NCBI GenBank assembly: GCA_021613535.1
Contig: CP075492.1
Location: 3,038,001-3,102,000 of the forward strand
DNA length: 64,000 nt
Source: Adineta vaga
Taxonomy: Eukaryota; Animalia; Rotifera
Direction: 5' to 3'
In this document: piece by piece, positions 6,104-54,390 of the stretch
Position numbering within the stretch: position 1 is the first letter of the stretch
Layout: each line of letters begins with the position of its first letter
Translations under genes and position numbers: made by a program
Notes under the pieces: generated by a model
What the model was told of the DNA's origin: nothing
The model's input: the letters and a program-made list of their open reading frames with translations, nothing else
The model's database searches: none

Positions 6104-9100
6104 ATGGACGAGGTATGATTTTGATTTTAATCAAAAGAAACAGAAAAATGTTATTTAGATTGAAATGATTTCTATTCATAATCCAATTCAATCGAACGAA
6201 CGTTCGAATAATGAACAACAAACAACTATTGAAATAGATAAAATCTCAGAGTTACTTTCTGATGATCAAGAAAATTTAGCAGAAGATAAAGAAAACAACA
6301 TGGATGATTTGAATCAAATATCAACATCACCTTGGAATCTGTATGTTTATTTTCATTTTCATCAATGATTCTATTCTTCTTCTTCTTCTTTAAGAGAATG
6401 TTTTGGTTTGAAAATATCAAGTTCAATTATTGGTACTTTTGCATTTTCATTCTTATTACTTGTTATGATGACAATTGGAATCATTATTGTTTATCTCAAT
6501 GTACCAAAACCGAAAGGTTCGTTTTTTTATTATTATTTAATTATAATAAAGAAATTGAATATTTTTTTATTTAATTAAGAATTAAAATGTGAATTAAATT
6601 TCGTAAAAACAAATTCAAATCCAATTGAATATAAATATGGTCCACAATCTGTTGCTATTGGAGATTTTAATGATGATAGTTGGATCGATATGGTTATTTG
6701 TAATTCAATTATTAATAATATTGATATTTATTTTGGATCCATTGATGGAACATTTTCTAAACAATTTCAATATTCAACAGGAATTAATTCCATTCCAATA
6801 ATGGTTGCTGTCAATCATTTAAATAATGATTCTTATTTGGATATTGCAGTGACAAATTATGGAAGACATTCAATTGGAATATTTTATGGATTTGGTAATG
6901 GATCTTTTAAAGATTCAATTGAAATCTCAACAGGAATATCACGACCATTAACAATTCATTTAATTGATTTAAATAATGATTTATTATGTGATATTATTAT
7001 TATTAATTATGGAACAAATAGTTTTAGTATTTTTTATGGAAATAAAAATGAAATCTATTCAAAAGTAATAACATATTCAACTGGTTATGATTCAATTCCT
7101 TATTCATTAACGATTGAAGATTTAAATAATGATTATCAATTAGATATTATTATTGCAAATTATGGAACAAATAATATTGGAATTTTCTTTTCTAATCATA
7201 ATAATTCATTTCAAAATCAAATACTTATTTCAATGGGTATTGATTCTCATCCAACTTCAGTTGCTGGTGGAGATTTAAATTCTGATCAATTTATTGATAT
7301 TGTTGTGACAAATTCTGGTACAAAAATGATATGTGTATTATTAAATGATGGAAATGGAACTTTCTCAAAACAAACATTCTATTCAACAGGTTCAATTTTA
7401 CCATATTCAATTGGAATTGATGATTTTAATGGAGATAATCGATTAGATTTATTTCTTATTAATATTGGAATTAATAATACTGGTTTATTTCTTGGTTATG
7501 GTAATGGAAGTTTTCAAGAAGGAATAATGAATTCAACGGGATCTTCTTCATCGATTTCATTTGTTTTATATGATTTGAATAAAGATAATCGATTAGATGC
7601 AATTATTGTCAATAATGATACGGGAAGTATTGATATTCTTAAAGGTTATTTTGAAGGTTTTCCACCTCGTACAAAGTTTAATGTTCAATATCCACCAATC
7701 TTTGTAATTGTCAGTGATTTTAATAACGATAGAATATTAGATATAATACTTGTTAGTGATGAGAACAATACAATGATGATTCAACTTGGACGTAGTGATG
7801 GATCATTTGAAACTCAAAGAACATATTCAACTGATTCGAATCCAACTTCCGTAGCTGTTGGTGATTTTAATGATGATACGAACATGGATGCAGTTGTTAC
7901 TAATAAGAATAGTAGTAATATTTATGTATTTCGTGGAAATGGAAATGGTTCATTTATAGAACAACAGATAATTTCAACTGGTTCTGGTCCAGTTTTTGCA
8001 GCTGTTGCTGATTTTAATAATGACAATCGATTAGACATCGTTGTTACTAATTATGATGACAATACTGTGAGTATTTTATTAGGATTTGGAAATGGTTCCT
8101 TTGCAAATCAAATGACATATTCAACGGGTTCTAGACCACGATCTGTTGCTGCAAGTGATTTCAATAATGATCATTATCTTGATCTAGTTGTTGTCAATTA
8201 TGGTAATAGAACGATTAGTATCCTTCTTGGTTATGGTAATGGAAGTTTTGCAAATCATTTCACATATCCAATTGGTTATCATCCGTACTTTGTAGCAATT
8301 GGCGATTTCAATAAAGATACTCAAATAGATATTGCTGTTGCCAATTCTGGTAGTAACACTGTGAGTGTTCTGTTAGGATATGGGAATGGAAGTTTCACAC
8401 CGCAAGTCATATATGGAACAGGTACTCAGCCAACATCTATAAGTATTGGAGACATGAATAATGATACACAATTGGATCTTGTTGTGGCTTGCGTCAGTGT
8501 GACGAATATTTATATTTTATTTGGATACGGAAATGGTTCGTTTAGCGATGCAATATCGTATTACACAAGTGTACATTCATATTCTGTTGCCATTGGAGAT
8601 TTAAATAATGATACACGACTGGATATAATTGTAACAAATAGAAATAATACTTTTATGAGTGTATTATTTCAATATAATAGAGGTGCCCTTCTAAATGAAT
8701 TGACATATGCAGCTGGTGGAGGTTCGAAATTACGATCCATAGTCGTTGATAATATAAATAATGATACTCGATTAGATATTATCGTTGCTAATTACGGTAC
8801 TGATGATGTTGGTATTCTTTTTGGACAAGATAATGTTACTTTTCTAGATCAAATAATGTTTAGTATGGGTTCGAATTCTCAACCATCATCCATTACTACT
8901 GGTCATTTTAATGATGATATTTACTTGGATATTGCTGTAGCTCTTTCTGGTCCTAATCAAATTGGATTGCTACTTGGAAATGGCCATGGATCATTTATTC
9001 GTCAAGCTACTTATCAAATTCCTTCCATATTTCCTCCTGTCATTGTTTCCGCTGATGATTTCAATAATGATAGACAATCAGAAATTATTGTTGGGTACGA

Positions 9101-10778
9101 TGACAGTGATACTATTGATATGTACGTTATACACAATACTGGATCTTTTACACTTCATGAAACATATTTAGTTGGTTTACGTCCAATATATCTATGCTTA
9201 GATTATATTAATGCTGATACTTACATTGATATTGTTGTTGTCAATTACGATTCTGACGAATTAAGTATTCTCCTTGGAAATGCTAATGGTAGTTTTGCAC
9301 AAGCATTGACTTATGCAACTAGTGCTCGGCCAAATTCTGTTGCTGCTAGTGATTTTAATAATGATAATCAACGAGATCTAGTTGTTACTTATGGTGGTAC
9401 GAATTATGTGACTATATTGTTAGGATATGGGAATGGTAGTTTTGCAAATCCAATGACATATTCACTTGACTCTGGCTCATTATTTTCAACTGTGGGTGAT
9501 TTCGACAATGATACACAACCAGATCTAGTTGTGGTTGCTGCAAATGGCAACATCGTTTTGTTTCAAGGATACGGTAACGGTTCTTTCTCAAATGGAACTA
9601 AAATTGAAGCTACCGGCAACTCACGATACGTGATTGCAACTGATTTTAATAATGATAGCCGCTTGGATTTTGCTCTTGCTAATTATGGTCCTGATAATGT
9701 AGGCATCTTTATTGGTTATGGCAATGGTTCTTTTGCACAAGAAGTAACATATTCAGTTGATTCCAATCCATTTGCATTAGCAGTTGGAGATCTAAATAAT
9801 GATAATCGATTAGATATTGTTGCAGCTACATTGGGTCATCGTACCATTACTGTCCTTCTTGGCTATGGTAATGGATCTTTTGCAGATAAAACAATCTTTC
9901 CAGTTGGTATTCTGCCAGAATCCGTAGCTATTGGTGATTTTAATCTTGACAGTTTTCCAGATATAATTGTTGCCAATCTTGGTGAAAATTTTGTTAGTGT
10001 ATTGTTAGGATATGGTGATGGAAGATTTGCACCTCAAATTAAATATACAACTGGTTCTGGTGCACAATCTGTGGCTATTTTCGATTTAAATAATGATACT
10101 CAACTTGACATTGTCGTTGCCAATGCAGGTGATTGCAATGTAGTTGTCATGTTTGGTTCCCCAAATTTAGCCTTCAGAAATCAAGTAATGCTTTCAACGG
10201 GTAAAAATTCACGATCAAGATCATTTGTTATTAACGATTTTAATAATGATAATTATACAGATATTATCGTCGCTAATTCAGGTACTGATAATATTGGTGT
10301 TTTTCTTGGATATGGAAATTTCTCTTTCACAAATCAAACAACATATTCAACTGGTAATAATTCTTCTCCATATTCTATTGTGACTGGTGATTTTAATAAT
10401 GATACACAATTAGATATTGTTAGTGCAAATTCAAATTCAGACAATATTGGTATTTTTCTTGGTTATGGAAATGGTTCATTTACAAATCAAACAACATATT
10501 TCACGGGTTCATCTTCATATCCTTATTCTTTAGCTATTAGTCATTTTAATAATGATACAATACTTGATATCATAGTTGTTAATTATAATAATAATAAATT
10601 TGGAGTTTTTCTTGGACATGGTGATGGAACATTTGATAATATCATTTTCTTTTCGATGCCATATGGATCGAATCCATTCTCTCTCATTGTTGCTGATTTT
10701 AGTCAAGATGGAAAAATGGATTTTGTGGTTGCGAATAATGGTACAGACAATTTAAATATTTATCTACAAACTTGTTAA
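6104..10778 (+). CDS. Type II membrane protein with a very large FG-GAP/VCBS (integrin-alpha-like beta-propeller) repeat ectodomain
   Basis: 1362-aa ORF with >20 DxNxDxxxDIVVxN..LGxGNGSF repeats. Upstream exons (6104-6112, 6159-6340, 6395-6516, 6580-) splice in frame and add an acidic N-tail plus one TM helix (SSIIGTFAFSFLLLVMMTIGIIIVYL). Confidence 0.9.
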
Positions 10779-11050
10779 TATTTTTTCTTAATTATTCTAA
10801 TAAATCTTTGAAGCACAGTTGTATGATTATATAGATGCAATATTCAAGATTGAGTAGTCGATTCGAATTGACGAACTATAAATAAGGGCACACTGACGAC
10901 CGACTACGAGACGAGCAATTTTGATATCGATTATATAACAATTTGTCATTAAAAAGATTCGGTTTATTTTCATAATAAATAAATTAAAGAAAGAAAGAAT
11001 ATAATCATATTTCTACTAGACTAACTAAATCTATCAAATTATTATATTTA

Positions 11051-12244
11051 TTATAAGTTCTGTTCATAGGGAGTACAAGTAATTCCCGAAGGATGTTCAT
11101 AATAACTACATCGAACAGTCGAATTGCCACTAGGAGCAACAATATTCCAATTGGTAAACATTAAATTACAAATACCCAAAGGTGGACAATCAATTCTTGC
11201 AACAACAGGATCATATCTTTTCGAAGTTTTTCCAATTAAATCTTTGAACTTGATATCAACTAATTGAGCAGTTGATGGATATTTTTTACAAATCATTGGA
11301 TCTGTTTCATAACAATTATCAACTTGAAGAGCATAATCACAATTGTCAATTAGAATATTTTCATATGTAACATTTTTAACACTAACAGTTCCATAAGATG
11401 GACCACCTGGATAAAATTTAATTCGAGTTGCAACTATCGAATTGATCATAGTTACATTTGATATAAAAATATTTTGAACAATATAATTTCGTTGAGATTC
11501 TAATCCAAGACTTCCAACTGATAAACCATGAGATCCATTACATGTGATATTATTAACAAAAATATAATTTGAACCATTTTTAAATGAAATACAATCATCA
11601 CCATTTGTAACATGAAGATTCTTTATTGTTACATATGAACAATCACCTGTATCAAAACCATCAGTATTTGCAGGTCGATTTGATGATGTTGATATCGCAC
11701 TTAGACTTAAATCAGAAAATTCAATATTTGTAGAATTATTTGTGACAAAGAAAAACCAAAATGGTGAATTGATTATTTTTAATTTCGTAAAAATTATATT
11801 CGAACTATTATTCATTTGTATCAATAAAGGTCTTTGATAACTTTGATTACGAGCAAAATAATCCCAATAACTTTGTCCATTTCCATCAATTAATCCTGAA
11901 CCAGTTAAAGAATAAAATGTTCCTCTAATAACATTTGATAAAAGCAAAAACGCTGTTTTGCCTTCCCAATATTGAAGATCATCAGATATTTTAAGAATTC
12001 CTTCAATTTGAACGAAACAATGAAAACATTCTTTAAAATCTAGAGGACTTCGAATCATAAATATTTCACCAGCAGGAATAATAATAGTCCCTCCATTTCC
12101 ACACAGTGATAAAGCTTTACTAATTGCCGGTACATCATCAATCGAACTATTTCTTGCAGATGAAGGTGTACAAGTTTTTCCATTTATTAATGAATAATAA
12201 TGGAATAAAATTAACCAAAAAAGTTTTTCTTTATACATCAACAT
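11051..12244 (-). CDS. Secreted GH28 polygalacturonase (pectinase)
   Basis: Signal peptide; all four GH28 motifs present (NTDG, GDD, SHG, RIK); intronless. Confidence 0.93.
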   Translation of the reverse strand: MLMYKEKLFWLILFHYYSLINGKTCTPSSARNSSIDDVPAISKALSLCGNGGTIIIPAGEIFMIRSPLDFKECFHCFVQIEGILKISDDLQYWEGKTAFLLLSNVIRGTFYSLTGSGLIDGNGQSYWDYFARNQSYQRPLLIQMNNSSNIIFTKLKIINSPFWFFFVTNNSTNIEFSDLSLSAISTSSNRPANTDGFDTGDCSYVTIKNLHVTNGDDCISFKNGSNYIFVNNITCNGSHGLSVGSLGLESQRNYIVQNIFISNVTMINSIVATRIKFYPGGPSYGTVSVKNVTYENILIDNCDYALQVDNCYETDPMICKKYPSTAQLVDIKFKDLIGKTSKRYDPVVARIDCPPLGICNLMFTNWNIVAPSGNSTVRCSYYEHPSGITCTPYEQNL

Positions 12245-12370
12245 GTTTTACTTTCGAATGATAAATGATATTCTTATCTTCTTATTTTTATTCTACACGA
12301 ATAAGAAAGAATGTAGAAGATAAAATTCTTGAATAGATATGGGAGAAAAAAGAATGTTTTTCTTTCTTCT

Positions 12371-13686
12371 TTAAATTGAATTATAAAAAACGTGTCCCGG
12401 ACCAGCTGATATTATTTGATATTGACCAAATGTATTTGGTGAATATGTTGTAAAAACTAAGATATATTTAATATCCGATCGAAGTACAGCTGTTACTTGA
12501 AATTGACGTGAATCACCAGTATCATCATCTTGCCCGAGAAGATTAATTGATTGAGCAAATGGATAAAAATTACCTTGATAAATATAACCATAGGTATCAA
12601 GAGAACTTGAACTTTTGAATGAATATGTTCCGGTTACATTCACACGTATTTCAATTGCTTGATAATAATGTGGTCCAGACGAAGTTCCATTACGATCATA
12701 AAAAGAATTACTTGATGTTAATTGATTAAAATAATTGGAATTCATTATTGGCGCACGAGTTGTTGTTGTTGTTGTTGTTGTTGTTGGATTTATTGGATAA
12801 AAATAAACATTATCTGGACCATCAGCAATAACTGAAAATGGTCCTGTTATACCTGGTCTATGTGTTGTCACAACTAAGACATACGGATGACCAGCTTCAA
12901 GATAAACTGGTATTTTAAATTGACTATTAGATGAACCATCATCATTATAAGTTATTAAATTTAATTGTGGATTTGATGGATTAAATGATCCATTATAAAG
13001 GTATCCATGTGTATCTATGTTACTTATACTTGATAGATCATAATAACCTGATGTTTGAACATATAATTGAAGAGCTTCATAATAATGTCCATACTGATTA
13101 CTTTCTGGACGAGTGTATAATCCATCTGTAGATGATAATGAACCTGTATAATTCGAAATAACATTTGATTGGTCAGTTGTTTCATAAACTAAAAGAAAAA
13201 TAATCAAAATAATTCGATTAATATTATGATTCTAACTATAAACCTATTCCTGATGGACATGCTTGTTCACCAGTCAGTGATAATGGATAACATATTGATT
13301 CCAAAGAATTACAATTTGGATGACGAATACAAACTTCATTTGATAGACAAACATCATTTGGTTGTTGACATACACGAAATTGTGAACAAGAATTATCAAT
13401 TAATCCACAAACAAACGTTGAACTTGAAAATGAATATTGTAAACATCCACATCGAGTACTTTGTGAACATGGACTATATTGATATTGATTTCCATCTCGA
13501 CATGTTTGACAATTTATATTTACTAAAAACGAGAAATTTCATTCATTTTGTCGATAAAAAAAAGAAAGAAATTCGTTTACTTGTCAAACTAAAATTAAGA
13601 AAAACAAATTTTATTCAAGTAAATCGTTTCTTCTTTTTGTTTTACCTTAAAAGAACAAGAAGAGAATGAAGATTTATTCTTAACAT
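12371..13686 (-). CDS. Secreted protein: Cys-rich domain + two tandem PPC-like beta-sandwich domains with a Thr linker
   Basis: Spliced model: signal peptide MLRINLHSLLVLLSLT (needs 8-nt microexon 13581-13588), Cys-rich exon (CQTC..CGC..C..C..CIRHPNC..CYP..CP), then ORF 12371..13207 with two DT(H/Y)GY(L/I)Y...(N/D)DD repeats. Confidence 0.75.
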
Positions 13687-14138
13687 TGTTGTATTCAAAT
13701 GAAATTATCCAAGATATTAGAATTCGATCATTTATATAGCTGTGATTTTAAGTCAATATATAATCTGTTGATTCGATCGGACTCTTTATATTTGTTTTGT
13801 GATTTTATTTCAATGTTATCGTCTCAAATATTATATTTTATATTTATTTTCCTATACAAAATTCCATCTCATTATCCTATTCAAATAATAAGTAGATCCA
13901 ATTTCAAATATTTTTGTCAGTTTTTTATTTCTAAATCTCATCAATGAAAAGAATATTTTCGTAGAATTATATGGAATTGTTCGGATCATGTCTTCTAAAC
14001 TTTTTTTTGTGAAAATAGCATTTATTTTTTCAGGATAAATTTTATTTTTCTAAATGTTCTATTGCGTGATTAATATAGATGAAAGAAAAAGACAAATAGA
14101 CAATGAATTTTTCAAGTAAATAAATGTGTTGAAGAATA

Positions 14139-15068
14139 TTAATGGGAACATCCAGTAATATCAATTAATTCACGTGGACAATCAACTTTTGAATAAGTCA
14201 TTGTAGGATTATCAGCACCTTTAAACCAATCAAAACGAAAGAAACATCCATCACGAATTTGTTCGGGAAGAGAAGAACATTCATCACGAGAATTTACACC
14301 ACCATGTCGTTGACCCCAACCATCATTTGGTGCATTCCATTGTGAAGAACATCCGTTAAAGATTCCTACGCCACCACCAGGAATTTGTAAATCAAATTGA
14401 TGATCAGCTACATCTTTTCCACTATTTGTAACTTGAACAATCATTGATTTGCCTCTAACTGGTTCACTAGTAAAATCTAATTTATAACAAGAACAACATC
14501 GATCTTGTTCATTCACACCTGGAATAGTTGCAGCTGCAAATCCATAAGCTAATTGCTCATTAATTGCCCATGGTTTTTGATTATTACAAGTAAAAGAATA
14601 ATCACCTTCACCACCATCATGACATCCACTTCTTGCGTGTGGATGATCAAATACAGAATATCCATCTTGACGACAACTTTTAACATAAATATTATTTCCG
14701 GATACATTTTCATCCCAAGCACAACTTGGTTTACAACAATCCCAATATCGTGTTGTTTTTCCCGGTTGTGAAGGTACATTATCTATAACACCACAAACCA
14801 TACTTCGATCATCTGTTGGAACAGCATTCTCTTTCGAAATAGCACCTTGTTTCATCCAACAAGTTCCACCATTATGAGTTGTCCATGTAAAATGAGTACA
14901 ACCTGATGTTGAAGCACATCTACCACCACAATCTTCACCACGAATTTGAACATTCATTAGATTATTTTCATGAAAATCACAAGCCAATGCCCAGTTTCCA
15001 TTCCATTCGATAGCAGATGTATGATAAATAATAAATAGACACACAACAAGCAACGCTAAAGATGACAT
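14139..15068 (-). CDS. Secreted PAN/apple-domain + GH45 endoglucanase (cellulase)
   Basis: Signal peptide; PAN-like module (CDF..CGGRC..GCTHFTW..GTCWMK); GH45 signatures TTRYWDCCKPSCAW and FDLQIPGGGVGIFNGC; intronless. Confidence 0.93.
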   Translation of the reverse strand: MSSLALLVVCLFIIYHTSAIEWNGNWALACDFHENNLMNVQIRGEDCGGRCASTSGCTHFTWTTHNGGTCWMKQGAISKENAVPTDDRSMVCGVIDNVPSQPGKTTRYWDCCKPSCAWDENVSGNNIYVKSCRQDGYSVFDHPHARSGCHDGGEGDYSFTCNNQKPWAINEQLAYGFAAATIPGVNEQDRCCSCYKLDFTSEPVRGKSMIVQVTNSGKDVADHQFDLQIPGGGVGIFNGCSSQWNAPNDGWGQRHGGVNSRDECSSLPEQIRDGCFFRFDWFKGADNPTMTYSKVDCPRELIDITGCSH

Positions 15069-15705
15069 GTTTTGGATATGTTTCGTACTATTTTTCTCGT
15101 TCCTTTTATATAGAAAATTAGATATGAGGTGGGAAATTTTTCACAAAATGACCTTATGCTCGTTGTTGTGGTTACAAAATGAATAATATTCTCTTTCAAT
15201 ACATAACAGACGTCGAATGGAAAATTTTAGTTCTGACTAGGCAGAATTGAAATTGATATTTTATAATGAAAAGAAGACGAAGAGAAAGATAGGAAATCTA
15301 CACCTCTTTTGTTTTTAGTGAACCATATCCATTAGTATGTTATATTGGAAATTTTTGGATATATGCTTGTTCTCGGTCAGTAGTTGTACGGTAGGAAGAG
15401 GAGACCTCAAACTTTGCAATAAGAGCTCAGTCAGTTAGAGCGCCATGGGCTTTACCGAAAGTACATGTACTATATATTATCGCCATTCAGTGCTCATCCT
15501 CACCCTCACCCTCACACCTTCATTTATTGAGGCCAATCAGGTTACAGCAGACTTTTATCATCAAGTATCTTTCGTACTTTAGATGAGAAACAAGTGATCG
15601 AAGGAAAAAAAACGCTTTTCTTTATGATGAAGAAACTAATTAATAAGAGAAGATTTTTATTCATCTTATTTTCCTCTAATCGTTCTTATGAATTTGATGT
15701 TTGTT

Positions 15706-16738
15706 TCAGATAGATTCAACAAATAAATTCATTTGTGGAGTTATTTGATTAATATGTTTCGATAAACATAACATTTTCAAATAATGTTTCACTTGACGAC
15801 GAAATCGTGATGATATGATCAAAAACAAATAAAAATTTATCTAAAAAAAGAAAGAACAAGAAAACTTTCCAAAAGAACTGAAATATCCTTACTGAAAAAT
15901 TCATATATAACAATGAATAGAAGATTGAACCAATGAGAAGTGTAATCGTTGATTTAATATCATTATTTTCATTAACATGAAGATTTAATTGATATAATGT
16001 TATAATAATATAAGGAAAACCAAAGATAATTAACGATAAAATTCTAATTAAAATCATTGCTGTTAATTGTTGATCAAGTCGACGACGAATTAATCGAGTT
16101 TGTCTTCGAATTATACGACGAACATTTACATAGGATAAGAAACTAAATGTTATTGTTATTAATAATGGAAATGCATTACTTAAAATTGGATAATAAAAAT
16201 ACGAGAAATATTTTTTGATTCTTTCATCATAAATTGTACATCCCAATGAAAATTGACGAATTTCTGAATAGATTACAAATAATATTCCATGAGAAAATGA
16301 TAAACCGAGGTTAAAAATTAGAAAATAATAAACTGATTTCATTGTACTTAATTGACGAAGATAATATCGAGGATTTGTAGACAAATATTGATCAATTGTA
16401 GTAAAACATATCGTAAATAATGAACATAAACCGAAAAATTGAGAAAAACCTGAACGAATTTTACACCATGCAATTGAAGTTAATGTTGGATCAAACTTTA
16501 AAATATTCGTTAATAAACGTGATGAACAAATAAAAATTAATAAACCAATATTAAAATAAGATTCAATGATTAAATATAAACTTGAAGGACTTTTACGAAA
16601 GATTTTCACATTTGTTAAAATGATTATTAAAGAAATATTACTTATTAAACCGAGGATCATATTAAATAGACCAAAGATAAAACGAATATCATTAGTTATA
16701 TCACGAAGATAATTGATTGTGGAATTTATTGATGACAT
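15706..16738 (-). CDS. Orphan rhodopsin-like 7TM GPCR
   Basis: Seven hydrophobic segments, WCKIR before TM3, TIDQY in the DRY position. A short 3' intron (FS|gtaag..tttag|) gives INFYLFLIISSRFRRQV...ESI*. Confidence 0.85.
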
Positions 16739-17466
16739 TTATTTTCTTTTCTTATTATTAAACACCACGTAAACAGCAGAATGCGTCTTTCTATGAGATT
16801 GTGTTGAGATACATTTTAAAAAAATCAACGGAATTTACTAAAAGCTCATTCATTTTTTTGTCTTTTGAGTTTGTTTGACTCAATGACGTTTAGTTTTTGC
16901 TTCATTTTTAAATTCAATTAAGATATAGAGGATAATTTCATAGGATAGATTACATTTTTTTAAATTAATTCTTGGTTCATAAATAATGTTATTAAGAAAA
17001 TCCTTTTGAAATTAGATTCTAGATCAGGTTAATTACAAGTGAAGAAATGAGAAATTGTATTATATTCTTTCGTAATTATTATTAAAAGAATCGAATAGAT
17101 CAACAATATTATCTATGATCAGATGTACCTTTGATTATATGGAAAGAAGATCATATAGACATTTTCCTTTGTGTAATATGATACGATATTGGATTATAGA
17201 AAGATTTTTAAAATTTCACAAAGATTCAGAATATTTCGAATGATTATTGTTTAACAATAAATTTTAGAAATTAGAATATCATACCCGCCGGCGTGTGGAT
17301 TAGATATGAAGGTGTGGGTGCTCCTTCGGTCATCATTCTTCACATTCACACTCTCTTCTCTTATATAGAGATAATTGGATTAGATGTGGGAAAAACAAGG
17401 AAAAGTCAGAAAATGACCAATCGGAAAACGAATTGATCTTGCTCGTCTTTTCGGTTAAGGAAACTT

Positions 17467-17470
<4 letters not shown>

Positions 17471-17496
<26 letters not shown>
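17471..17496. repeat. (CT)13 microsatellite upstream of the expansin-like gene
   Basis: Seen directly; the mirrored copy near 49312-49322 is only about (AG)5. Confidence 0.9.
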
Positions 17497-17497
<1 letters not shown>

Positions 17498-17720
17498 GCT
17501 ACATAACAGACGTGGAATAAGAAATATTTTGTTTCTCACCCATAGCTATATAAATGTTCGAGAGATAGTTCGTTCATCATTCTTACATCAACAAGAAAAT
17601 AGGTCAAGCATCATTTTAACTGTAAGTAAAAATAAATGAAAATTGAATCAATTGATTACCATCGAATATAGAAAATCATTTTTATTCAATTTAGAATCTG
17701 TTTCTCCATCGAACAAAACT

Positions 17721-18650
17721 ATGCATGAAAGTTGTACGATGATGATTTTTGTGCTATATGCAGTTTTGATGAGTTCTTTATCAGGTCATGTTATGAAGCG
17801 TAGTATTGAATGGACGGGAAATTGGGCATTGGCTTGTGATTTTCATGAAAATAATCTAATGAATGTTCAAATTCGTGGTGAAGATTGTGGTAGTAGATGT
17901 GCTTCAACATCAGGTTGTACTCATTTTACATGGACAACTCATAATGGTGGAACTTGTTGGATGAAACAAGGTGCTGTTTCGAAAGAGAATGCTGTTCCAA
18001 CCGATGATCGAAGTATGGTTTGTGGTGTCAATGAAAAAGAACCAATAAATGAAGTAATGAATGATGTTCATACAACACGTCATGGTGCTACTGAATATGG
18101 AGCATGTGCACTTCCAGCATCAGATTATGCAGTTACTAATCCAGTTGCACTGGGAAATATTGAATCATTGAAAGCTCTCAAATTTCGTCCTGAATTATGT
18201 GGTCACATTCTTAATGTTGATTGTGGTCATGGATCATTAGATATTATTGTAACAAATTCAAATTTAGGAGGTGGTCTTGATCTCTATGGTTCAACTTGGG
18301 ACAAACTTACAAATAATAAACCACCTGGAATAACTTCATGTAATGTTAAATTAGCTGATCGTAATGCTTTCCAATTTGATGGTCCTCGTTGTTATTACAA
18401 TCCTGGCAGTCCAATTGACAATGCTTATTATAAAAATATTGGACTTTTAAATACAAATGGTCGTCTAGTTGTTAAAGCAACAATTGATAATCAGTCTGGA
18501 GTACATCAGGGAACTAATCCTTATTATGCATTTAATTTTGGTCCAATCGATGAAAATAAACAAGTTATATTTACTTTTGAAGATGGAAATACTCATTCAG
18601 TTTTCTTACGTGATTGTCAAAAACAACAAAATCAACAAAGATGGAGTTAA
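17721..18650 (+). CDS. Secreted PAN/apple-domain + expansin-like (DPBB + C-terminal CBM63-like) protein
   Basis: Signal peptide; same PAN module as the GH45; GACALP, CGHILNVDC, IIVTN..GGGLDL fit an expansin/DPBB domain 1, followed by an aromatic-rich beta domain; TATA-like TATATAAA near 17547; intronless. Confidence 0.75.
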   Translation: MHESCTMMIFVLYAVLMSSLSGHVMKRSIEWTGNWALACDFHENNLMNVQIRGEDCGSRCASTSGCTHFTWTTHNGGTCWMKQGAVSKENAVPTDDRSMVCGVNEKEPINEVMNDVHTTRHGATEYGACALPASDYAVTNPVALGNIESLKALKFRPELCGHILNVDCGHGSLDIIVTNSNLGGGLDLYGSTWDKLTNNKPPGITSCNVKLADRNAFQFDGPRCYYNPGSPIDNAYYKNIGLLNTNGRLVVKATIDNQSGVHQGTNPYYAFNFGPIDENKQVIFTFEDGNTHSVFLRDCQKQQNQQRWS

Positions 18651-19871
18651 AATGAAACTTCATTAGAAAGTTCAATAATTTGTTTTTTTTGTCTACCTTT
18701 TTCTTGTAGAACATCTTATTGGTTCAGAAGATAATAAACTACACGTAGATGATAATAATGATATCTCTTTCTGTTATGAATTGTTCTAATCGATTTAACA
18801 ACCTTATCAAACTCTTTAGCAAATTAAAAATAATGACAGTATTCTTCTCGATTCTCAGTCTATGTCATTATAAGTTTTTTATTCAAATTAGATCGACATG
18901 ACAAAAGAATGTAATAATCATTATATTTAATTCAAGTTAATAAGTGATTTTTATCTGCATGAATAAGATGAATAAAGAATCTCAAGAGAATTTATTGAAT
19001 GTCTGAATGAACCAAATAACAACATTGTTATAGTTAGTAGATTATGTGATACGATTACCTATCTTTCGATTATTTTGATTCATATTTCAAAGAATACGAG
19101 GACATAAGAACAATCTGCTTTGTTTTCATACCGACTTTATCTGACGAAAAGTCATTTTACATGCTTGTTGTGTAATTGCGTTTTTATTATTATCTTAAAT
19201 ATCAAAACTGGCAGAATATTTGTCAAATACAAGAAATGTATCCTATTTCATTATGAAAAGCTTGGTTTTCTATGCCACAAAGTTATTTAGTGCATCTATT
19301 ATTATAGTGGTAAAACTTCGATCATACTAATCTATATCAAAGAAGGATATCCGAGTGTAAGTCTTGGTTTCGAGATGGTGTTATATTAGTTTAGTTGTTA
19401 CCAGTTGCACCTTTTAAGATTGATAATACGTATCTAGACTGTTCTTCTAAATAAAACCACTGACCACGTCTATTGTTTGAATATTTCGTTATTATTGGTA
19501 TTGAATGAACTAGCATACAGATTAAAGTTTGTAAAGCCAGAGCTTCACAAAGATTTCTCAATGATGACCAGTGGAGAGAAACGCTTTATACTATTGGTAA
19601 TCAGCTCAACAGATACAATATCTCAACATCCATCTTATGGTGTTATTATCCTTTTTCATTCTTAAAAAAAACATATTAGAGGACCTCCTTCTAGATTTTC
19701 GATATCGAAACATGATACAAAAACAAGAATCTTTTAAACTAGAGAGAGGTTATAAACCTTACGTTTTCAGAACAATAGAAATATGATTGAAAAACAAATA
19801 AAAATGAGTGAAATATTTTAAAGTATATATAAGTATTGTTATTATCAATTGGGAATTTGATTTTACATATT

Positions 19872-46860: not shown

Positions 46861-48158
46861 TGCTCTCAAAACGTAAGGTTTATAACCTCTCTCCAGTTTA
46901 AAAGATTCTTGTTTTTGTATCATGTCTCGATATCGAAAATCTAAAAGAAGGTCTTCTGATGTCTAATATTTATTTTATGCTTTGGCATTTTCCATAGTAA
47001 AGTCTAAAGCTAGATTTTCAGTCGAAAACTCTATAAAATAGGATTAGTTGATGATAAAAACACGAATTAAAGATCTGTCTTCTAATATGTTTTTTTTAAG
47101 AATGAAAAGGGATAATAACACCATAAGATGGATGTTGAGATAGTGTATCTGTTGAGCTGATTACCAGTAGTCTAAAGCGTTTCTCTCCAATAGCTATCAT
47201 TGAGAAATCTTTTTGAAGCTCTGGCTTAACAAACTTTAATTTGCATACTAGTTATCGTATCACATAATCTACTAACTATAACAATGTTGTTATTTATTTT
47301 ATTAAGACATTCGATAAATTCTCTTGAGATTCTTTATTCAACTCATCCATACAGATAAAAATCACTTATTAACTTGAGTTAAATATTTAAAACTTTCTAT
47401 TGGTGTTTTTTTCAAGAAGAAAAAGTTTTATATTAACCATCGGTTCCGACTCAGACAATGATAATTTTAATTTAGCTATTGAATTTATTTGAAATGATCT
47501 CTAAGCGATATTTTCTTTATTACAACTGACTAAACTATAACTCTTGTTACAATAAATAATAGAAAATTTATTGGATGAGTTAATATGTTACATTAATATC
47601 CAATGGAGCAACAACAACAACAGGAATGATTCTGTCAATACAAAGAAGTGAAACATTTCGTTCAGTATCAAATCAAAATGAAATTGCAAACCTTACTATT
47701 GAAAGTGATTTTTCATTACTTTTATTAAACTTTTGATAACTTTTTGTTCACGGGTGCATTCTCTTCATTTCATTCCGCTCGTATTCCAACTATACAATTT
47801 ATATTATCGAGAAGTAACAACAGTAATTACATCGAAAATGTACCCTGATGAATATTCATTAAAAATCACTGATGGTAATGTTCATGTATGATTATTACAT
47901 TCTTTTGTCATGTCGATCTAATTTGAATAAAAAACTTATAATGACATAGACTGAGAATCGAGAAGAATACTGTCATCATTCTCAATTTGCTGAAGAGTTT
48001 GATAAGGTTGTTAAATCGATTAGAACAATTCATAACAGAAAGAGATATCATTATTATCATCTACGTGTATTTTGTTATTTTCTGAATCAATAAGATGTTC
48101 TACAAGAAAAAGGTAGACAAAAAAAACAAATTATTGAACTTTCTAATGAAGTTTCATT

Positions 48159-49088
48159 TTAACTCCATCTTTGTTGATTTTGTTGTTTTTGACAATCACG
48201 TAAGAAAACTGAATGAGTATTTCCATCTTCAAAAGTAAATATAACTTGTTTATTGTCATCGATTGGACCAAAATTAAATGCATAATAAGGATTAGTTCCC
48301 TGATGTACTCCAGACTGATTATCAATTGTTGCTTTAACAACTAGACGACCATTTGTATTTAAAAGTCCAATATTTTTATAATAAGCATTGTCAATTGGAC
48401 TGCCAGGATTGTAATAACAACGAGGACCATCAAATTGGAAAGCATTACGATCAGCTAATTTAACATTACATGAAGTTATTCCAGGTGGTTTATTATTTGT
48501 AAGTTTGTCCCAAGTTGAACCATAGAGATCAAGACCACCTCCTAAATTTGAATTTGTTACAATAATATCTAATGATCCATGACCACAATCAACATTAAGA
48601 ATGTGACCACATAATTCAGGACGAAATTTGAGAGCTTTCAATGATTCAATATTTCCCAATGCAACTGGATTAGTAACTGCATAATCTGATGCTGGAAGTG
48701 CACATGCTCCATATTCAGTAGCACCATGACGTGTTGTATGAACATCATTCATTACTTCATTTATTGGTTCTTTTTCATTGACACCACAAACCATACTTCG
48801 ATCATCTGTTGGAACAGCATTCTCTTTCGAAACAGCACCTTGTTTCATCCAACAAGTTCCACCATTATGAGTTGTCCATGTAAAATGAGTACAACCTGAT
48901 GTTGAAGCACATCTACCACCACAATCTTCACCACGACTTTGAATATTCATTAGATTATTTTCATGAAAATCACAAGCCAATGCCCAATTTCCCGTCCATT
49001 CAATACTACGCTTCATAACATGACCTGATAAAGAACTCATCAAAACTGCATATAGCACAAAAATCATCATCGTACAGCTTTCATGCAT
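48159..49088 (-). CDS. PAN + expansin-like secreted protein, copy 2
   Basis: 4 aa differences from copy 1. Confidence 0.75.
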   Translation of the reverse strand: MHESCTMMIFVLYAVLMSSLSGHVMKRSIEWTGNWALACDFHENNLMNIQSRGEDCGGRCASTSGCTHFTWTTHNGGTCWMKQGAVSKENAVPTDDRSMVCGVNEKEPINEVMNDVHTTRHGATEYGACALPASDYAVTNPVALGNIESLKALKFRPELCGHILNVDCGHGSLDIIVTNSNLGGGLDLYGSTWDKLTNNKPPGITSCNVKLADRNAFQFDGPRCYYNPGSPIDNAYYKNIGLLNTNGRLVVKATIDNQSGVHQGTNPYYAFNFGPIDDNKQVIFTFEDGNTHSVFLRDCQKQQNQQRWS

Positions 49089-50054
49089 AGTTTTGTTCGA
49101 TGGAGAAACAGATTCTAAATTGAATAAAAATGATTTTCTATATTCGATGGTAATCAATTGATTCAATTTTCATTTATTTTTACTTACAATTAAAATGATG
49201 CTTGATCTATTTTCTTGTTTATGTAAGAATGATGAACGAACTATCTCTCGAACATTTATATAGCTATGGGTGAGAAACAAAATATTTCTTATTCCACGTC
49301 TGTTATGTAGCGAGAGAGAGAGGATTAAGTTTCCTTAACCGAAAAGACGAGCAAGATCAATTCGTTTTCCGATTGGTCATTTTCTGACTTTTCCTTGTTT
49401 TTCCCACATCTAATCCAATTATCTCTATATAAGAGAAGAGAGTGTGAGTGTGAAGAATGATGACCGAAGGAGCACCCACACCTTCATATCTAATCCACAC
49501 GCCGGCGGGTATGATATTCTAATTTCTAAAATTTATTGTTAAACAATAATCATTCGAAATATTCTGAATCTTTGTGAAATTTTAAAAATCTTTCTATAAT
49601 CCAATATCGTATCATATTACACAAAGGAAAATGTCTATATGATCTTCTTTCCATATAATCAAAGGTACATCTGATCATAGATAATATTGTTGATCTATTC
49701 GATTCTTTTAATAATAATTACGAAAGAATATAATACAATTTCTCATTTCTTCACTTGTAATTAACCTGATCTAGAATCTAATTTCAAAAGGATTTTCTTA
49801 ATAACATTATTTATGAACCAAGAATTAATTTAAAAAAATGTAATCTATCCTATGAAATTATCCTCTATATCTTAATTGAATTTAAAAATGAAGCAAAAAC
49901 TAAACGTCATTGAGTCAAACAAACTCAAAAGACAAAAAAATGAATGAGCTTTTAGTAAATTCCGTTGATTTTTTTATAATGTATCTCAACACAATCTCAT
50001 AGAAAGACGCATTCTGCTGTTTACGTGGTGTTTAATAATAAGAAAAGAAAATAA

Positions 50055-51087
50055 ATGTTATCAATAAATTCCACAATCAATTATCTTCGTGATATAACTA
50101 ATGATATTCGTTTTATCTTTGGTCTATTTAATATGATCCTCGGTTTAATAAGTAATATTTCTTTAATAATCATTTTAACAAATGTGAAAATCTTTCGTAA
50201 AAGTCCTTCAAGTTTATATTTAATCATTGAATCTTATTTTAATATTGGTTTATTAATTTTTATTTGTTCATCACGTTTATTAACGAATATTTTAAAGTTT
50301 GATCCAACATTAACTTCAATTGCATGGTGTAAAATTCGTTCAGGTTTTTCTCAATTTTTCGGTTTATGTTCATTATTTACGATATGTTTTACTACAATTG
50401 ATCAATATTTGTCTACAAATCCTCGATATTATCTTCGTCAATTAAGTACAATGAAATCAGTTTATTATTTTCTAATTTTTAACCTCGGTTTATCATTTTC
50501 TCATGGAATATTATTTGTAATCTATTCAGAAATTCGTCAATTTTCATTGGGATGTACAATTTATGATGAAAGAATCAAAAAATATTTCTCGTATTTTTAT
50601 TATCCAATTTTAAGTAATGCATTTCCATTATTAATAACAATAACATTTAGTTTCTTATCCTATGTAAATGTTCGTCGTATAATTCGAAGACAAACTCGAT
50701 TAATTCGTCGTCGACTTGATCAACAATTAACAGCAATGATTTTAATTAGAATTTTATCGTTAATTATCTTTGGTTTTCCTTATATTATTATAACATTATA
50801 TCAATTAAATCTTCATGTTAATGAAAATAATGATATTAAATCAACGATTACACTTCTCATTGGTTCAATCTTCTATTCATTGTTATATATGAATTTTTCA
50901 GTAAGGATATTTCAGTTCTTTTGGAAAGTTTTCTTGTTCTTTCTTTTTTTAGATAAATTTTTATTTGTTTTTGATCATATCATCACGATTTCGTCGTCAA
51001 GTGAAACATTATTTGAAAATGTTATGTTTATCGAAACATATTAATCAAATAACTCCACAAATGAATTTATTTGTTGAATCTATCTGA
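50055..51087 (+). CDS. Orphan 7TM GPCR, copy 2
   Basis: 1 aa difference from copy 1 in the ORF track; 3' intron ~50901-50952. Confidence 0.85.
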
Positions 51088-51721
51088 AAGAAATATCAAT
51101 TTCATTAGAACGATTAGAGAAAAATAAGATGAATAAAAATCTTCTCTTATTAATTAGTTTCTTCATCATAAAGAAAGCGTTTTTTTCTTCGATCACTTGT
51201 TTCTCATCTAAAGTACGAAAGATACTTGATGATAAAAGTCTGCTGTAACCTGATTGGCCTCAATAAATGAAGGTGTGAGGGTGAGGGTGAGGATGAGCAT
51301 TGAATGGCGATAATATATAGTACATGTACTTTCGGTAAAGCCCATGGCGCTCTAACTGACTGAGCTCTTATTGCAAAGTTTGAGGTCTCCTCTTCCTACC
51401 GTACAACTACTGACCGAGAACAAGCATATATCCAAAAATTTCCAACATAACATACTAATGGATATGGTTCACTAAAAACAAAAGAGGTGTAGATTTCCTA
51501 TCTTTCTCGTCGTCTTCTTTTCATTATAAAATATCAATTTCAATTCTGTCTAGTCAGAACTAAAATTTTCCATTCGACGTCTGTTATGTATTGAAAGAGA
51601 ATATTATTCATTTTGTAACCACAACAACGAGCATAAGGTCATTTTTGTGAAAAATTTCCCACTCATATCTAATTTTCTGTATAAAAGGAACGAGAAAAAT
51701 AATACGAAACATATCCAAAAC

Positions 51722-52651
51722 ATGTCATCTTTATCGTTGCTTGTTGTGTGTCTATTTATTATTTATCATACATCTGCTATCGAATGGAATGGAAACTGGG
51801 CATTGGCTTGTGATTTTCATGAAAATAATCTAATGAATATTCAAAGTCGTGGTGAAGATTGTGGTGGTAGATGTGCTTCAACATCAGGTTGTACTCATTT
51901 TACATGGACAACTCATAATGGTGGAACTTGTTGGATGAAACAAGGTGCTGTTTCGAAAGAGAATGCTGTTCCAACCGATGATCGAAGTATGGTTTGTGGT
52001 GTTATAGATAATGTACCTTCACAACCGGGAAAAACAACACGATATTGGGATTGTTGTAAACCAAGTTGTGCTTGGGATGAAAATGTATCCGGAAATAATA
52101 TTTATGTTAAAAGTTGTCGTCAAGATGGATATTCTGTATTTGATCATCCACATGCAAGAAGTGGATGTCATGATGGTGGTGAAGGTGATTATTCTTTTAC
52201 TTGTAATAATCAAAAACAATGGGCAATTAATGACCAATTAGCTTATGGATTTGCAGCTGCAACTATTCCAGGTGTGAATGAACAAGATCGATGTTGTTCT
52301 TGTTATAAATTAGATTTTACTAGTGAACCAGTTAGAGGCAAATCAATGATTGTTCAAGTTACAAATAGTGGAAAAGATGTAGCTGATCATCAATTTGATT
52401 TACAAATTCCTGGTGGTGGTGTAGGAATCTTTAACGGATGTTCTTCACAATGGAATGCACCAAATGATGGTTGGGGTCAACGACATGGTGGTGTAAATTC
52501 TCGTGATGAATGTTCTTCTCTTCCCGAACAAATTCGTGATGGATGTTTCTTTCGTTTTGATTGGTTTAAAGGTGCTGATAATCCTACAATGACTTATTCA
52601 AAAGTTGATTGTCCACGTGAATTAATTGATATTACTGGATGTTCCCATTAA
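51722..52651 (+). CDS. PAN + GH45 endoglucanase, copy 2
   Basis: TTRYWDCCKPSCAW; 6 aa differences from copy 1. Confidence 0.93.
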   Translation: MSSLSLLVVCLFIIYHTSAIEWNGNWALACDFHENNLMNIQSRGEDCGGRCASTSGCTHFTWTTHNGGTCWMKQGAVSKENAVPTDDRSMVCGVIDNVPSQPGKTTRYWDCCKPSCAWDENVSGNNIYVKSCRQDGYSVFDHPHARSGCHDGGEGDYSFTCNNQKQWAINDQLAYGFAAATIPGVNEQDRCCSCYKLDFTSEPVRGKSMIVQVTNSGKDVADHQFDLQIPGGGVGIFNGCSSQWNAPNDGWGQRHGGVNSRDECSSLPEQIRDGCFFRFDWFKGADNPTMTYSKVDCPRELIDITGCSH

Positions 52652-53080
52652 TATTCTTCAACACATTTATTTACTTGAAAAATTCATTATTTGTTTGTTT
52701 TTTTTCTTTCATCTTTATTAATCACGCAATAGAACATTTAGAAAAATAAAATTTATCCTGGAAAAATAAATGCTATTTTCACAAAAAAAGTTTGGAAGAC
52801 ATGACCCGAACAATTCCATATAATTCTACGAAAATATTCTTTTCATTGATGAGATTTAGAAATAAAAAACCGACAAAAATATTTGAATAGGATAATGAGA
52901 TGGAATTAGGTATAAGAAAATAAATATGAAATATAATCTTTGAGAAAACAACATTGAAATAAAATCACAAAACAAATATAAAGAGTCCGATCGAATCAAC
53001 AGATTATATGTTGACTTAAAATCACAGCTATATAAATGATGGAATTCTAGCATCTTGGATAATTTCATTTGAATACAACA

Positions 53081-54390
53081 ATGTTAAGAATAAATCTTCA
53101 TTCTCTTCTTGTTCTTTTAAGGTAAAACAAAAAGAAGAAACGATTTACTTGAATAAAATTTGTTTTTCTTAATTTTAGTTTGACAAGTAAACAAATTTCT
53201 TTCTTTTTTTTATCGACAAAATGAATGAAATTTCTCGTTTTTAGTAAATATAAATTGTCAAACATGTCGAGATGGAAATCAATATCAATATAGTCCATGT
53301 TCACAAAGTACTCGATGTGGATGTTTACAATATTCATTTTCAAGTTCAACGTTTGTTTGTGGATTAATTGATAATTCTTGTTCACAATTTCGTGTATGTC
53401 AACAACCAAATGATGTTTGTCTATCAAATGAAGTTTGTATTCGTCATCCAAATTGTAATTCTTTGCAATCAATATGTTATCCATTATCACTGACTGGTGA
53501 ACAAGCATGTCCATCAGGAATAGGTTTATAGTTAGAATCATAATATTAATCGAATTATTTTGATTATTTTTCTTTTAGTTTATGAAACAACTGACCAATC
53601 AAATGTTATTTCGAATTATACAGGTTCATTATCATCTACAGATGGATTATACACTCGTCCAGGAAGTAATCAATATGGACATTATTATGAAGCTCTTCAA
53701 TTATATGTTCAAACATCAGGTTATTATGATCTATCAAGTATAAGTAACATAGATACACATGGATACCTTTATAATGGATCATTTAATCCATCAAATCCAC
53801 AATTAAATTTAATAACTTATAATGATGATGGTTCATCTAATAGTCAATTTAAAATACCAGTTTATCTTGAAGCTGGTCATCCGTATGTCTTAGTTGTGAC
53901 AACACATAGACCAGGTATAACAGGACCATTTTCAGTTATTGCTGATGGTCCAGATAATGTTTATTTTTATCCAATAAATCCAACAACAACAACAACAACA
54001 ACTCGTGCGCCAATAATTAATTCCAATTATTTTAATCAATTAACTTCAAGTAATTCTTTTTATGATCGTAATGGAACTTCGTCTGGACCACATTATTATC
54101 AAGCAATTGAAATACGTGTGAATGTAACCGGAACATATTCATTCAGAAGTTCAAGTTCTCTTGATACCTATGGTTATATTTATCAAGGTAATTTTTATCC
54201 ATTTGCTCAATCAATTAATCTTCTCGGGCAAGATGATGATACTGGTGATTCACGTCAATTTCAAGTAACAGCTGTACTTCGATCGGATATTAAATATATC
54301 TTAGTTTTTACAACGTTTTCACCCAATCAATTTGGTCAATATCAAATAATATCAGCTGGTCCGGGACACGTTTTTTATAATTCAATTTAA
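53081..54390 (+). CDS. Cys-rich + tandem PPC-like secreted protein, copy 2
   Basis: ATG 53081, microexon 53179-53186, Cys-rich exon, last exon in ORF 53560..54390. Confidence 0.75.

Follow-up and report, generated by a model that had tools for sequence, protein, structure and literature searches.

Gene conversion between the arms of inverted repeats is familiar from the palindromes of the human Y chromosome. Recombination in bdelloid rotifers is debated. Gene conversion has been reported in these animals (PMC8494291). The locus of Adineta vaga described here resembles these systems in that the copies are inverted on one chromosome, near-identity is retained within a genome while species diverge, and the tracts end where homology ends. 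However, the unit concerned is not a gene or a palindrome arm, but a domain module of about 206 bp that a cellulase gene and an expansin-like gene have in common although they are unrelated elsewhere, and the same pair is affected independently in a springtail and in several rotifers. Descriptions of gene conversion usually concern whole duplicated genes or palindrome arms, whereas here it appears to be confined to one domain block. Interlocus gene conversion leading to domain-level concerted evolution, and recurring across phyla, is a reading well supported by the sequence comparisons.

In plant-parasitic nematodes, a CBM2 module is common to GH5 cellulases and expansin-like proteins (Gr-EXP1, HaEXPB2; PMC5093861). 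Both systems comprise an animal cellulase and an expansin-like protein with the same kind of N-terminal non-catalytic module beside a DPBB-type body, but the nematode module is a bacterial CBM2 and the module considered here is a PAN/Apple domain. The nematode paper describes the module as resembling that of endoglucanases, with no report of adjacent genes, of grouping by species or of homogenisation that continues. The A. vaga cellulase belongs to the same catalytic family as the GH45 cellulases of springtails, oribatid mites and beetles (PMC13084967), and the Folsomia candida enzyme is a member of the group analysed here; a search of that paper for the relevant terms found mention neither of gene conversion nor of a PAN/Apple domain or an adjacent expansin-like gene. 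We found no paper in the open-access literature on the pair formed by PAN-GH45 and PAN-expansin genes, or on its homogenisation. The mechanism is already known, but this gene pair and the recurrence of the process in it appear to be undescribed. Carbohydrate-binding modules occur on fungal GH45 enzymes, and the PAN/Apple domain is likely to be a functional stand-in, as yet putative, for these modules and for those of the nematode expansins.

The window (the whole stretch of 64,000 nucleotides that was analysed) contains a large inverted repeat, which is real in the assembly. The outer block of the left arm (6151..18921) matches that of the right arm (47888..60571, read from 60571 to 47888) with 98.05% identity over 12.8 kb in blastn, as also followed in a substitution profile, and a second inverted block pairs 22154-25136 with 37204-34219 (98.8% identity). 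Each arm carries one unit composed of a GH45, a GPCR and an expansin-like gene. In the left arm, the GH45 endoglucanase gene (14139..15068, reverse strand; a single ORF of 309 aa encoding a signal peptide, PAN and GH45) and the expansin-like gene (17736..18650, forward strand; an ORF of 304 aa from the first ATG, encoding a signal peptide, PAN and a two-domain EXLX-like body) are arranged head to head with 2.8 kb between them, which places their PAN modules in a short inverted repeat. Between these modules, in the 2.8-kb interval, lies the ORF of a rhodopsin-type GPCR (15749..16738, reverse strand; Pfam 7tm_1, 36.4 bits). The right-arm counterparts are the GH45 gene (51722..52651, forward strand; protein P0001, 98% identical to the left copy), the GPCR gene (50055..51044, forward strand; one substitution with respect to the left copy) and the expansin-like gene (48159..49073, reverse strand). 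In both secreted proteins, the PAN module follows the signal peptide directly.

The assignment of the cellulase to GH45 in the original prediction was borne out by Pfam (Glyco_hydro_45, PF02015; 231 bits, E 1.7e-68, profile positions 2-213 of 214). The 206-bp stretch encodes, judging from its sequence, a complete six-cysteine PAN/Apple domain. For PAN_4 (PF14295, cut-off 27), the left expansin-like copy scored above the threshold (28.0 bits) and the left GH45 copy just under it (26.6 bits), homologues carry precomputed PF14295 and PF00024 (PAN_1) assignments, and the six cysteines, contained in 72 residues, are conserved in 31/31 aligned PAN domains. The name "expansin" stands as a statement about fold, but not about sequence family. 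No Pfam match was found for the body at E values up to 0.01, and a profile built from 14 homologues found no expansin among PDB sequences. By contrast, the top 12 Foldseek matches of the AlphaFold model (pLDDT 89) were all expansins, the best of them bacterial and fungal (TM 0.64-0.70, E 8e-11 to 7e-6, about 196-225 columns aligned). The C-terminal 206 residues match, along their full length, the two-domain fold of microbial EXLX proteins (B. subtilis EXLX1, 3d30; Clavibacter, 4jcw; Streptomyces, 9ms5), from which the A. vaga protein differs in its low identity (15-19%) and in its fusion to an N-terminal PAN. The protein is therefore predicted to adopt the two-domain EXLX fold, a double-psi beta-barrel followed by a beta-sandwich, with expansin activity remaining putative.

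Alignment confirmed both the coordinates and the near-identity originally reported for four PAN modules, located in the left-arm GH45 gene (c1, 14788..14993, reverse strand), the left-arm expansin-like gene (c2, 17823..18028, forward strand), the right-arm expansin-like gene (c3, 48781..48986, reverse strand) and the right-arm GH45 gene (c4, 51797..52002, forward strand). The four modules are 98-99.5% identical. Between the two genes, which cannot be aligned elsewhere, module identity is 98.5-99.5%, and the A. vaga genome has no further copy closer than 88%, so chance fails to explain the pattern. Homology extends for about 19 bp further 5' of the module, where 4 of the 19 positions differ and are sorted by gene, and the flanks beyond are unrelated. 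Within the 206 bp, with the four copies aligned in coding orientation, five sites vary: two are sorted by arm, one is crossed, two are singletons and none is sorted by gene. The two non-synonymous sites said to follow the arms (MNVQIRGED in the left, MNIQSRGED in the right) do so: at the first (G/A, Val/Ile), both left-arm genes have G and both right-arm genes A, and at the second (T/G, Ile/Ser), 7 bp further on, T is found in the left arm and G in the right (14951 and 14944 in c1, 17865 and 17872 in c2, 48944 and 48937 in c3, 51839 and 51846 in c4). The silent ACA/ACC site is likewise crossed as described, with A on the coding strand of GH45-left (14814) and expansin-right (48807), and C in expansin-left (18002) and GH45-right (51976). 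The alignment also revealed two singletons that had gone unreported, one in the left expansin-like copy (17892; G/A, Gly/Ser) and the other in the left GH45 copy (14840; A/G, Ile/Val).

Polarisation with two paralogous modules, L005 (88%) and L006 (76%), showed both arm-sorted states of the right arm to be derived. The two right-arm modules thus share two derived states absent from both left-arm modules, which requires at least one inter-gene conversion after the divergence of the arms; given the short distance between them, the two sites may reflect a single event. At the crossed silent site, both outgroup paralogues carry a third base, T, indicating a fast site at which recurrent mutation is possible. 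With the informative sites numbering just three, of which two are linked, the "repeated" conversion of the original prediction is solid for one event and weaker for the second, that of the crossed site. A 2.8-kb inversion through crossover between the inverted modules was considered as a source of the crossed site and rejected, as the arms are colinear and there is no net inversion; two successive inversions are possible and would be indistinguishable from conversion.

The small number of informative sites would also be compatible with a single recent transfer or overwriting of the PAN shortly before the large inverted duplication, the later differences being independent mutations or noise, and the number of differences per 206 bp is indeed of the same order between the genes of one arm (3 and 1) as between arms (4 and 4). 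However, the derived states common to both right-arm modules require either a transfer after the split or parallel mutation, and the probability of two identical parallel changes is about 2e-5. Furthermore, the same pair has been homogenised after speciation in Rotaria and in Folsomia (see below), and we regard a single transfer as very unlikely. The arms differ by 1.9% in the modules and by 1.0% overall, while the remainder of their coding sequence shows a difference of 0.26%, with 9 substitutions over 3443 bp; this fits variation imported into the modules from the other gene. The nearest positions telling the arms apart are 14637 and 15056 for the GH45 gene and, for the expansin-like gene, 17732 and 18150. 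The A. vaga expansin-like gene differs by 11% from a paralogue 280 kb away, evenly across PAN (88% identity) and body, whereas its PAN is 99% identical to that of the GH45 gene, and the PAN tree places the A. vaga module as sister to expansin-like PANs (91/89). These observations together indicate that the identity of the modules is recent.

The status of the arms themselves deserves caution, since the older (2013) A. vaga assembly contained palindromes that were later judged to stem from mis-scaffolded haplotypes, and the allelic divergence of this species, about 1.7% (PMC8494291), is similar to that between the arms (about 1-2%). The arms might accordingly be two haplotypes of one single-copy locus that were fused head to head, or the module variants might have been misplaced by read mapping in polishing. 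However, the window is free of N, the arms are divided by a 9-kb unique spacer at 25137-34218 and show asymmetric internal segments, and identity at their outer ends is lost gradually rather than abruptly (from 99% to 92%, to 83%, to none). In addition, three DNA runs show variants present in neither arm (six sites in 16607-16714, plus 14823 and 18302), and the haploid assembly has no further copy above 80%; this suggests more than two versions of the locus, although mosaic haplotypes could mimic such a pattern. Contig depth is not a copy number, and these indirect hints favour a real duplication. An exact-protein look-up of both GH45 copies, aimed at independent A. vaga assemblies, returned no match. 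The Logan contigs for 14001-19000 (three DNA runs and one probable RNA run) end at 14813, 14970/14995, 17846 and 17999/18003, and none bridges a module. A C/A polymorphism at 18002 is present in three runs; the variant table derived from these contigs has no row for the right-arm states at 14944/14951 and 17865/17872, a missing row not being evidence of absence. Polishing errors would mix the arms of the same gene and would not make the two genes of one arm agree. Even were the arms haplotypes, states sorted by haplotype but common to two genes would still need inter-gene conversion. The cross-species evidence is unaffected by the status of the arms, and we consider an assembly artefact unlikely as the source of the pattern.

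The original prediction proposed asking at orthologous loci of other isolates whether PAN trees follow the locus or the gene. In a comparison across species, whose outcome favours the prediction, PAN sequences were found to group by species or locus, not by gene. The PAN protein tree pairs GH45 with expansin-like sequences within species in Folsomia (100/99), R. sordida (98/97), Rotaria sp. Silwood1 (97/92) and A. vaga (98/89). In the two Rotaria species, the informative sites of the signal peptide and 5' PAN support grouping by species over grouping by gene by 37:0, whereas in the 3' quarter of PAN the ratio is 0:10. Over a tract made up of the signal peptide and the 5' three quarters of PAN, the two genes are identical at 237/238 bases in Rotaria sp. 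Silwood1 (99.6%) and at 229/238 in R. sordida (96.2%), and near-identity between genes runs on for about 15 bp into the 5' UTR in the former and about 165 bp upstream in the latter. The same 5' tract is only 81-82% identical between the two species, so the copies are more alike within a genome than orthologues are between species. In the last quarter of PAN, on the other hand, the expansin-like sequences are 91.5% identical between species, as compared with 56-66% between genes. In Folsomia candida, the shared tract measures 232 bp and has sharp edges; its identity is about 96%, and most of the differences are synonymous. Sharp tract edges, or sites sorted by gene outside the tract, are observed at the A. 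vaga 5' edge, in the Rotaria 3' quarter and in Folsomia.

Constraint or convergence at the protein level, keeping both PAN domains alike without DNA transfer, might be considered given that PAN is a conserved cysteine-rich fold and that both proteins presumably act on similar substrates. It is contradicted by the identity at synonymous, untranslated and upstream positions in Rotaria sp. Silwood1, R. sordida and an uncultured rotifer, with identity at synonymous or non-coding positions found in Folsomia as well; moreover, 4/5 of the A. vaga module variants change an amino acid, so constraint is not tight. We attach a negligible probability to this explanation. The core claim of ectopic conversion homogenising one PAN module between the cellulase and expansin-like genes holds, based on the lack of gene-sorted sites, the derived arm-shared states and the grouping across species.

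The two genes are close and inverted in most of the sampled lineages, being adjacent head to head in Folsomia and tail to tail in both Rotaria species. In the uncultured rotifer, neither lies within 8 kb of the other and yet they share at least 970 bp at 95% identity, with identity reaching at least 640 bp upstream; close adjacency is therefore not strictly required. In A. steineri, which serves as a control, the sampled GH45 and expansin-like genes occupy separate contigs, and no sampled expansin-like PAN exceeds 71% identity with the GH45 PAN. Two neighbours of GH45 genes, a 174-aa protein in A. steineri and a 299-aa protein beside the metagenomic GH45 P0004, were examined as expansin-like candidates and discarded, having no similarity to the expansin-like protein. 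The Hypsibius GH45 P0011 has no expansin-like neighbour at its locus, and the look-up of the tardigrade GH45 P0035 gave no record.

Sequence pattern, tract boundaries and species grouping are direct observations, whereas the mechanism of repair, how many events there were and in which direction, and any functional benefit are matters of inference. In the repair envisaged, a broken module would be restored from another by non-allelic conversion, the copied tract stopping where homology stops. In A. vaga, at least one transfer between the two genes after arm divergence would have put the two derived substitutions into both right-arm modules; alternatively, transfers in opposite directions in the two arms may have sorted an older difference. 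The crossed silent site probably reflects a further exchange. The same process would have acted on the same gene pair in the Rotaria species, the uncultured rotifer and Folsomia candida, with the tract outside A. vaga comprising either the PAN exon region alone or also promoter-proximal DNA and the signal peptide. As a whole, we consider it likely that the modules are kept near-identical by interlocus gene conversion in A. vaga and in other lineages.

We read the homogenisation mainly as a mechanical by-product of the common module. Selection for co-regulation and for a matched putative substrate-binding module might instead be the reason why a 5' cassette (PAN, or promoter, signal peptide and PAN) is held identical by recurrent conversion in a gene pair adjacent in most sampled lineages across phyla. 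This proposal is rather doubtful; if true, conversion would be a coupling device between non-homologous genes, not a by-product. Whichever applies, the locus offers a natural system for studying conversion tract lengths and rates in bdelloids. It also calls for caution with domain phylogenies of horizontally acquired carbohydrate-active genes, as the PAN trees here record the history of the locus and not that of the gene. It would be of interest to use this system to determine whether the common module, together with the promoter and signal peptide in Rotaria, ties a cellulase to a putative wall-loosening protein in expression and targeting. Contigs of the probable RNA run cover 14102-14781 in the left GH45 gene and 17869-18758 in the left expansin-like gene.

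Alignment placed the four copies of the 206-bp PAN module where the original prediction had them: c1 (14788-14993, minus strand) and c4 (51797-52002, plus strand) in GH45 genes, and c2 (17823-18028, plus strand) and c3 (48781-48986, minus strand) in expansin-like genes. The window, with a G+C content of 29% and no Ns, comes from a chromosome-level assembly of six contigs (100.8 Mb). The copies lie in a large inverted repeat, c1 and c2 in the left arm and c3 and c4 in the right arm, and each arm carries one unit in which a rhodopsin-type GPCR gene (15749-16738 in the left arm) separates head-to-head GH45 and expansin-like genes. A GH28 polygalacturonase ORF (11051-12244; Pfam, 191 bits) is found 2 kb from the GH45 gene in each arm, making a cluster of three plant-cell-wall-active genes per arm.

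The ORF containing c1 or c4 encodes 309 aa, with a signal peptide, PAN and GH45 (Pfam Glyco_hydro_45, 231 bits; PAN_4, 26.6 bits). The ORF containing c2 or c3 encodes about 304 aa, with a signal peptide, PAN (28.0 bits) and a 206-residue body, for which we found no Pfam match and no PDB sequence match. An AlphaFold model of this body, based on 14 homologues (pLDDT 89), aligned over its full length with bacterial, fungal and plant expansins; the best 12 structural matches were all expansins (TM 0.64-0.70 for the microbial ones; lowest E value 8e-11). Since the matches come from the fold and not from the sequence, it is the predicted fold only that justifies the name expansin-like.

The four aligned modules differ at five sites, none of which sorts by gene. 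Site 1 (G/A, Val/Ile) and site 2, 7 bp further on (T/G, Ile/Ser), sort by arm, with G and T in both left-arm genes and A and G in both right-arm genes. Sites 3 (Gly/Ser) and 4 (Ile/Val) are singletons of c2 and c1, respectively, and site 5 is a silent ACA/ACC difference crossed between arms and genes (A in c1 and c3; C in c2 and c4). The two arm-sorted replacements and the crossed silent site had been predicted correctly, but the two singletons had been left out. Four of the five variants change an amino acid, so the PAN module is not under tight constraint. In the 19 bp directly 5' of the block, four positions are gene-sorted, and farther out the two genes cannot be aligned.

As outgroups we used two paralogous PAN modules: L005 (88% identity), which belongs to an expansin-like paralogue at a distance of 280 kb, and L006 (76% identity). 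At sites 1 and 2, both right-arm states are derived, and the chance that two modules acquired the same two substitutions in parallel is about 2e-5. These comparisons indicate that sequence passed between the GH45 and expansin-like modules at least once after the arms, or two versions of the locus, had diverged. At site 5, L005 and L006 both carry T, a third base, and the crossed pattern needs either a further exchange or recurrent change at an evidently fast site. The suggestion of repeated ectopic conversion after the duplication thus holds for at least one inter-gene transfer, but the crossed site, which was part of the case for repetition, also fits recurrent change. Arm-to-arm divergence in the modules is 1.9% (8 substitutions in 412 bp), versus 0.26% (9 in 3443 bp) in other coding sequence and 1.0% for the arms overall. 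This excess fits variation imported from the other gene; for example, conversions in opposite directions in the two arms would redistribute an older between-gene difference.

Logan contigs of four runs (three of DNA, one probably of RNA) were mapped onto 14001-19000. They stop at 14813, 14970/14995, 17846 and 17999/18003, and none bridges a PAN module, as expected if the module is common to the genes and polymorphic, because the assembly graph must then branch. In three runs, both C and A occur at position 18002. Over the modules the summed depth of the contigs is about twice as high, in agreement with two genes having the module in common, although such depth is not a copy number. In a probable RNA run, coverage was confined to 14102-14781 and 17869-18758, in both ORFs, apart from two fragments of about 20 bp of the GPCR gene in one contig, suggesting that the GH45 and expansin-like genes are both transcribed. 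A probable RNA contig of run X14 (record 11, 17869-18065, expansin-like gene) has six differences, four of which are listed: 17993, 18002, and 18027 with 18029, which change a Val codon to Leu at the PAN/body junction. The two unlisted ones, near its start, are probably 17872 and 17892 and, with 18002, would match the right-arm copy. This contig seems to come from a third expressed allele or from another strain.

The three DNA runs contained variants absent from both arms (14823, 15262, 16034, 16045, 16088, 16607-16714, 18302 and 18728), presumably from the other haplotype. The 14823 variant, within the PAN module, is a silent GCT to GCA change, also seen at 17993 in a probable RNA contig; a 108-bp stretch of the GPCR gene (16607-16714) holds six of the sites, with about 30-48% of the contig depth there.

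It is unlikely that the inverted repeat is an assembly artefact in which the arms are haplotypes. Some caution is needed, as the palindromes in the 2013 A. vaga assembly have been attributed to faulty scaffolding and heterozygosity is about 1.7% (PMC8494291); mosaic haplotypes could also produce variants seen in neither arm. However, the three DNA runs do carry neither-arm variants (14823, 16034-16088, 16607-16714 and 18302), the sequence is contiguous, its interior is asymmetric, identity falls off gradually at the outer ends of the arms, and the assembly holds no further copy with more than 80% identity. The outer blocks (6151-18921 and 60571-47888) are 98.05% identical and the inner blocks (22154-25136 and 37204-34219) 98.8%, with a spacer of about 9 kb between the arms. 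A tandem duplication on the right side only (39133-40322 and 45303-46796; period about 6.4 kb, 84-94% identity) makes the interior asymmetric, with 3.2 kb versus 10.7 kb between conserved blocks. Artefact or not, the main conclusion stands, since haplotype-level states common to two genes would still need inter-gene conversion. Elsewhere in the arms, a 15-bp stretch (12432-12446; partner 54315-54329) holds five arm-to-arm substitutions, in an otherwise 99% identical ORF (12371-13207) with a Thr-rich linker and no Pfam match, suggesting a small foreign patch or a complex mutation. A 16-bp (CT)n upstream of the expansin-like gene (17471-17486) is present in the left arm only.

Proteins combining PAN with GH45 or with the expansin-like body are both widespread, with examples in bdelloids, monogonont rotifers, tardigrades, Folsomia candida, Macrostomum, a mermithid nematode and a sponge. 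As predicted for PAN trees, a maximum-likelihood tree of 31 PAN domains grouped the modules by species or locus over gene, joining the GH45 and expansin-like modules of Folsomia (100/99), A. vaga (98/89), Rotaria sordida (98/97) and Rotaria sp. Silwood1 (97/92), the two Rotaria pairs being mutually sister (96/90). In Silwood1, the genes match at 237 of 238 bases from the signal peptide through three quarters of PAN, and near-identity extends about 15 bp into the 5' UTR; in R. sordida the same tract is identical at 229 of 238 positions, with near-identity reaching about 165 bp farther upstream. Between these species the tract is 81-82% identical. The last PAN quarter groups by gene (expansin-like, 91.5% across species versus 56-66% across genes), and informative sites, counted as by species against by gene, come to 37:0 in the 5' tract, 0:10 in the 3' PAN quarter and 0:11 after PAN. 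In Folsomia, a sharp-edged tract of 232 bp is about 96% identical, with mostly synonymous differences. An uncultured rotifer (ENA ERZ26165376) has at least 970 bp in common (95%, gapless; L036:7361-8330 and L039:1-970), covering upstream DNA, signal peptide, PAN and linker, and reaching the end of one contig; its genes are on different contigs, with no expansin-like gene within 8 kb of the GH45 gene. By contrast, the sampled A. steineri genes occupy separate contigs, and no sampled expansin-like PAN is more than 71% identical to the GH45 PAN. Because synonymous and non-coding positions are identical too, protein-level constraint is ruled out as the cause, and because homogenisation took place after speciation, so is a single ancient shuffle.

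Through PAN and body, which align without a break, the expansin-like gene diverges from its paralogue by 11.3%, so PAN is native to this lineage and evolves at the pace of the body. The GH45 gene lacks a close paralogue (amino-acid identity 47-57%). The PAN tree makes the A. vaga module the sister of PANs from the A. vaga paralogue and from an expansin-like protein of A. ricciae (91/89), suggesting that the expansin-like gene overwrote the GH45 module, but GH45 sampling in Adineta is thin.

The identity pattern, tract edges and incongruent phylogenies were seen directly. In the mechanism we propose, breaks in one PAN module would be repaired from another by homologous repair, and inverted orientation (A. 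vaga, Folsomia and both Rotaria) would permit exchange with the interval kept, so that the arrangement can persist. Selection for a matched PAN, or in Rotaria for a matched promoter and signal peptide, may or may not be involved. Interlocus conversion is a textbook process; in the literature searched, we found no conversion that is confined to one domain of two non-homologous genes and repeated in that pair across phyla, and it is this restriction and recurrence that appear to be new here.

Fungal GH45 enzymes carry CBM1 where the A. vaga GH45 has PAN. Similarly, nematode expansins have CBM2 at the position taken by PAN in the A. vaga expansin-like protein (PMC5093861). A substrate-binding role for PAN, proposed from these positions, is therefore a reasonable hypothesis.

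The GH45 and PAN-expansin-like genes are immediate or near inverted neighbours in one springtail and three rotifers, head to head in A. vaga and Folsomia (L028) and tail to tail in Rotaria (L029, Silwood1; L030, R. sordida), being either an old linked pair or a pair transferred as a unit. A rhodopsin-type (7tm_1) GPCR gene is found within about 1-7 kb of GH45 in A. vaga (15749-16738), Folsomia (L028:858-1922), A. steineri (L031:2705-3889) and a metagenomic rotifer contig (L037:12790-13704); this may be chance, since GPCR families are large.
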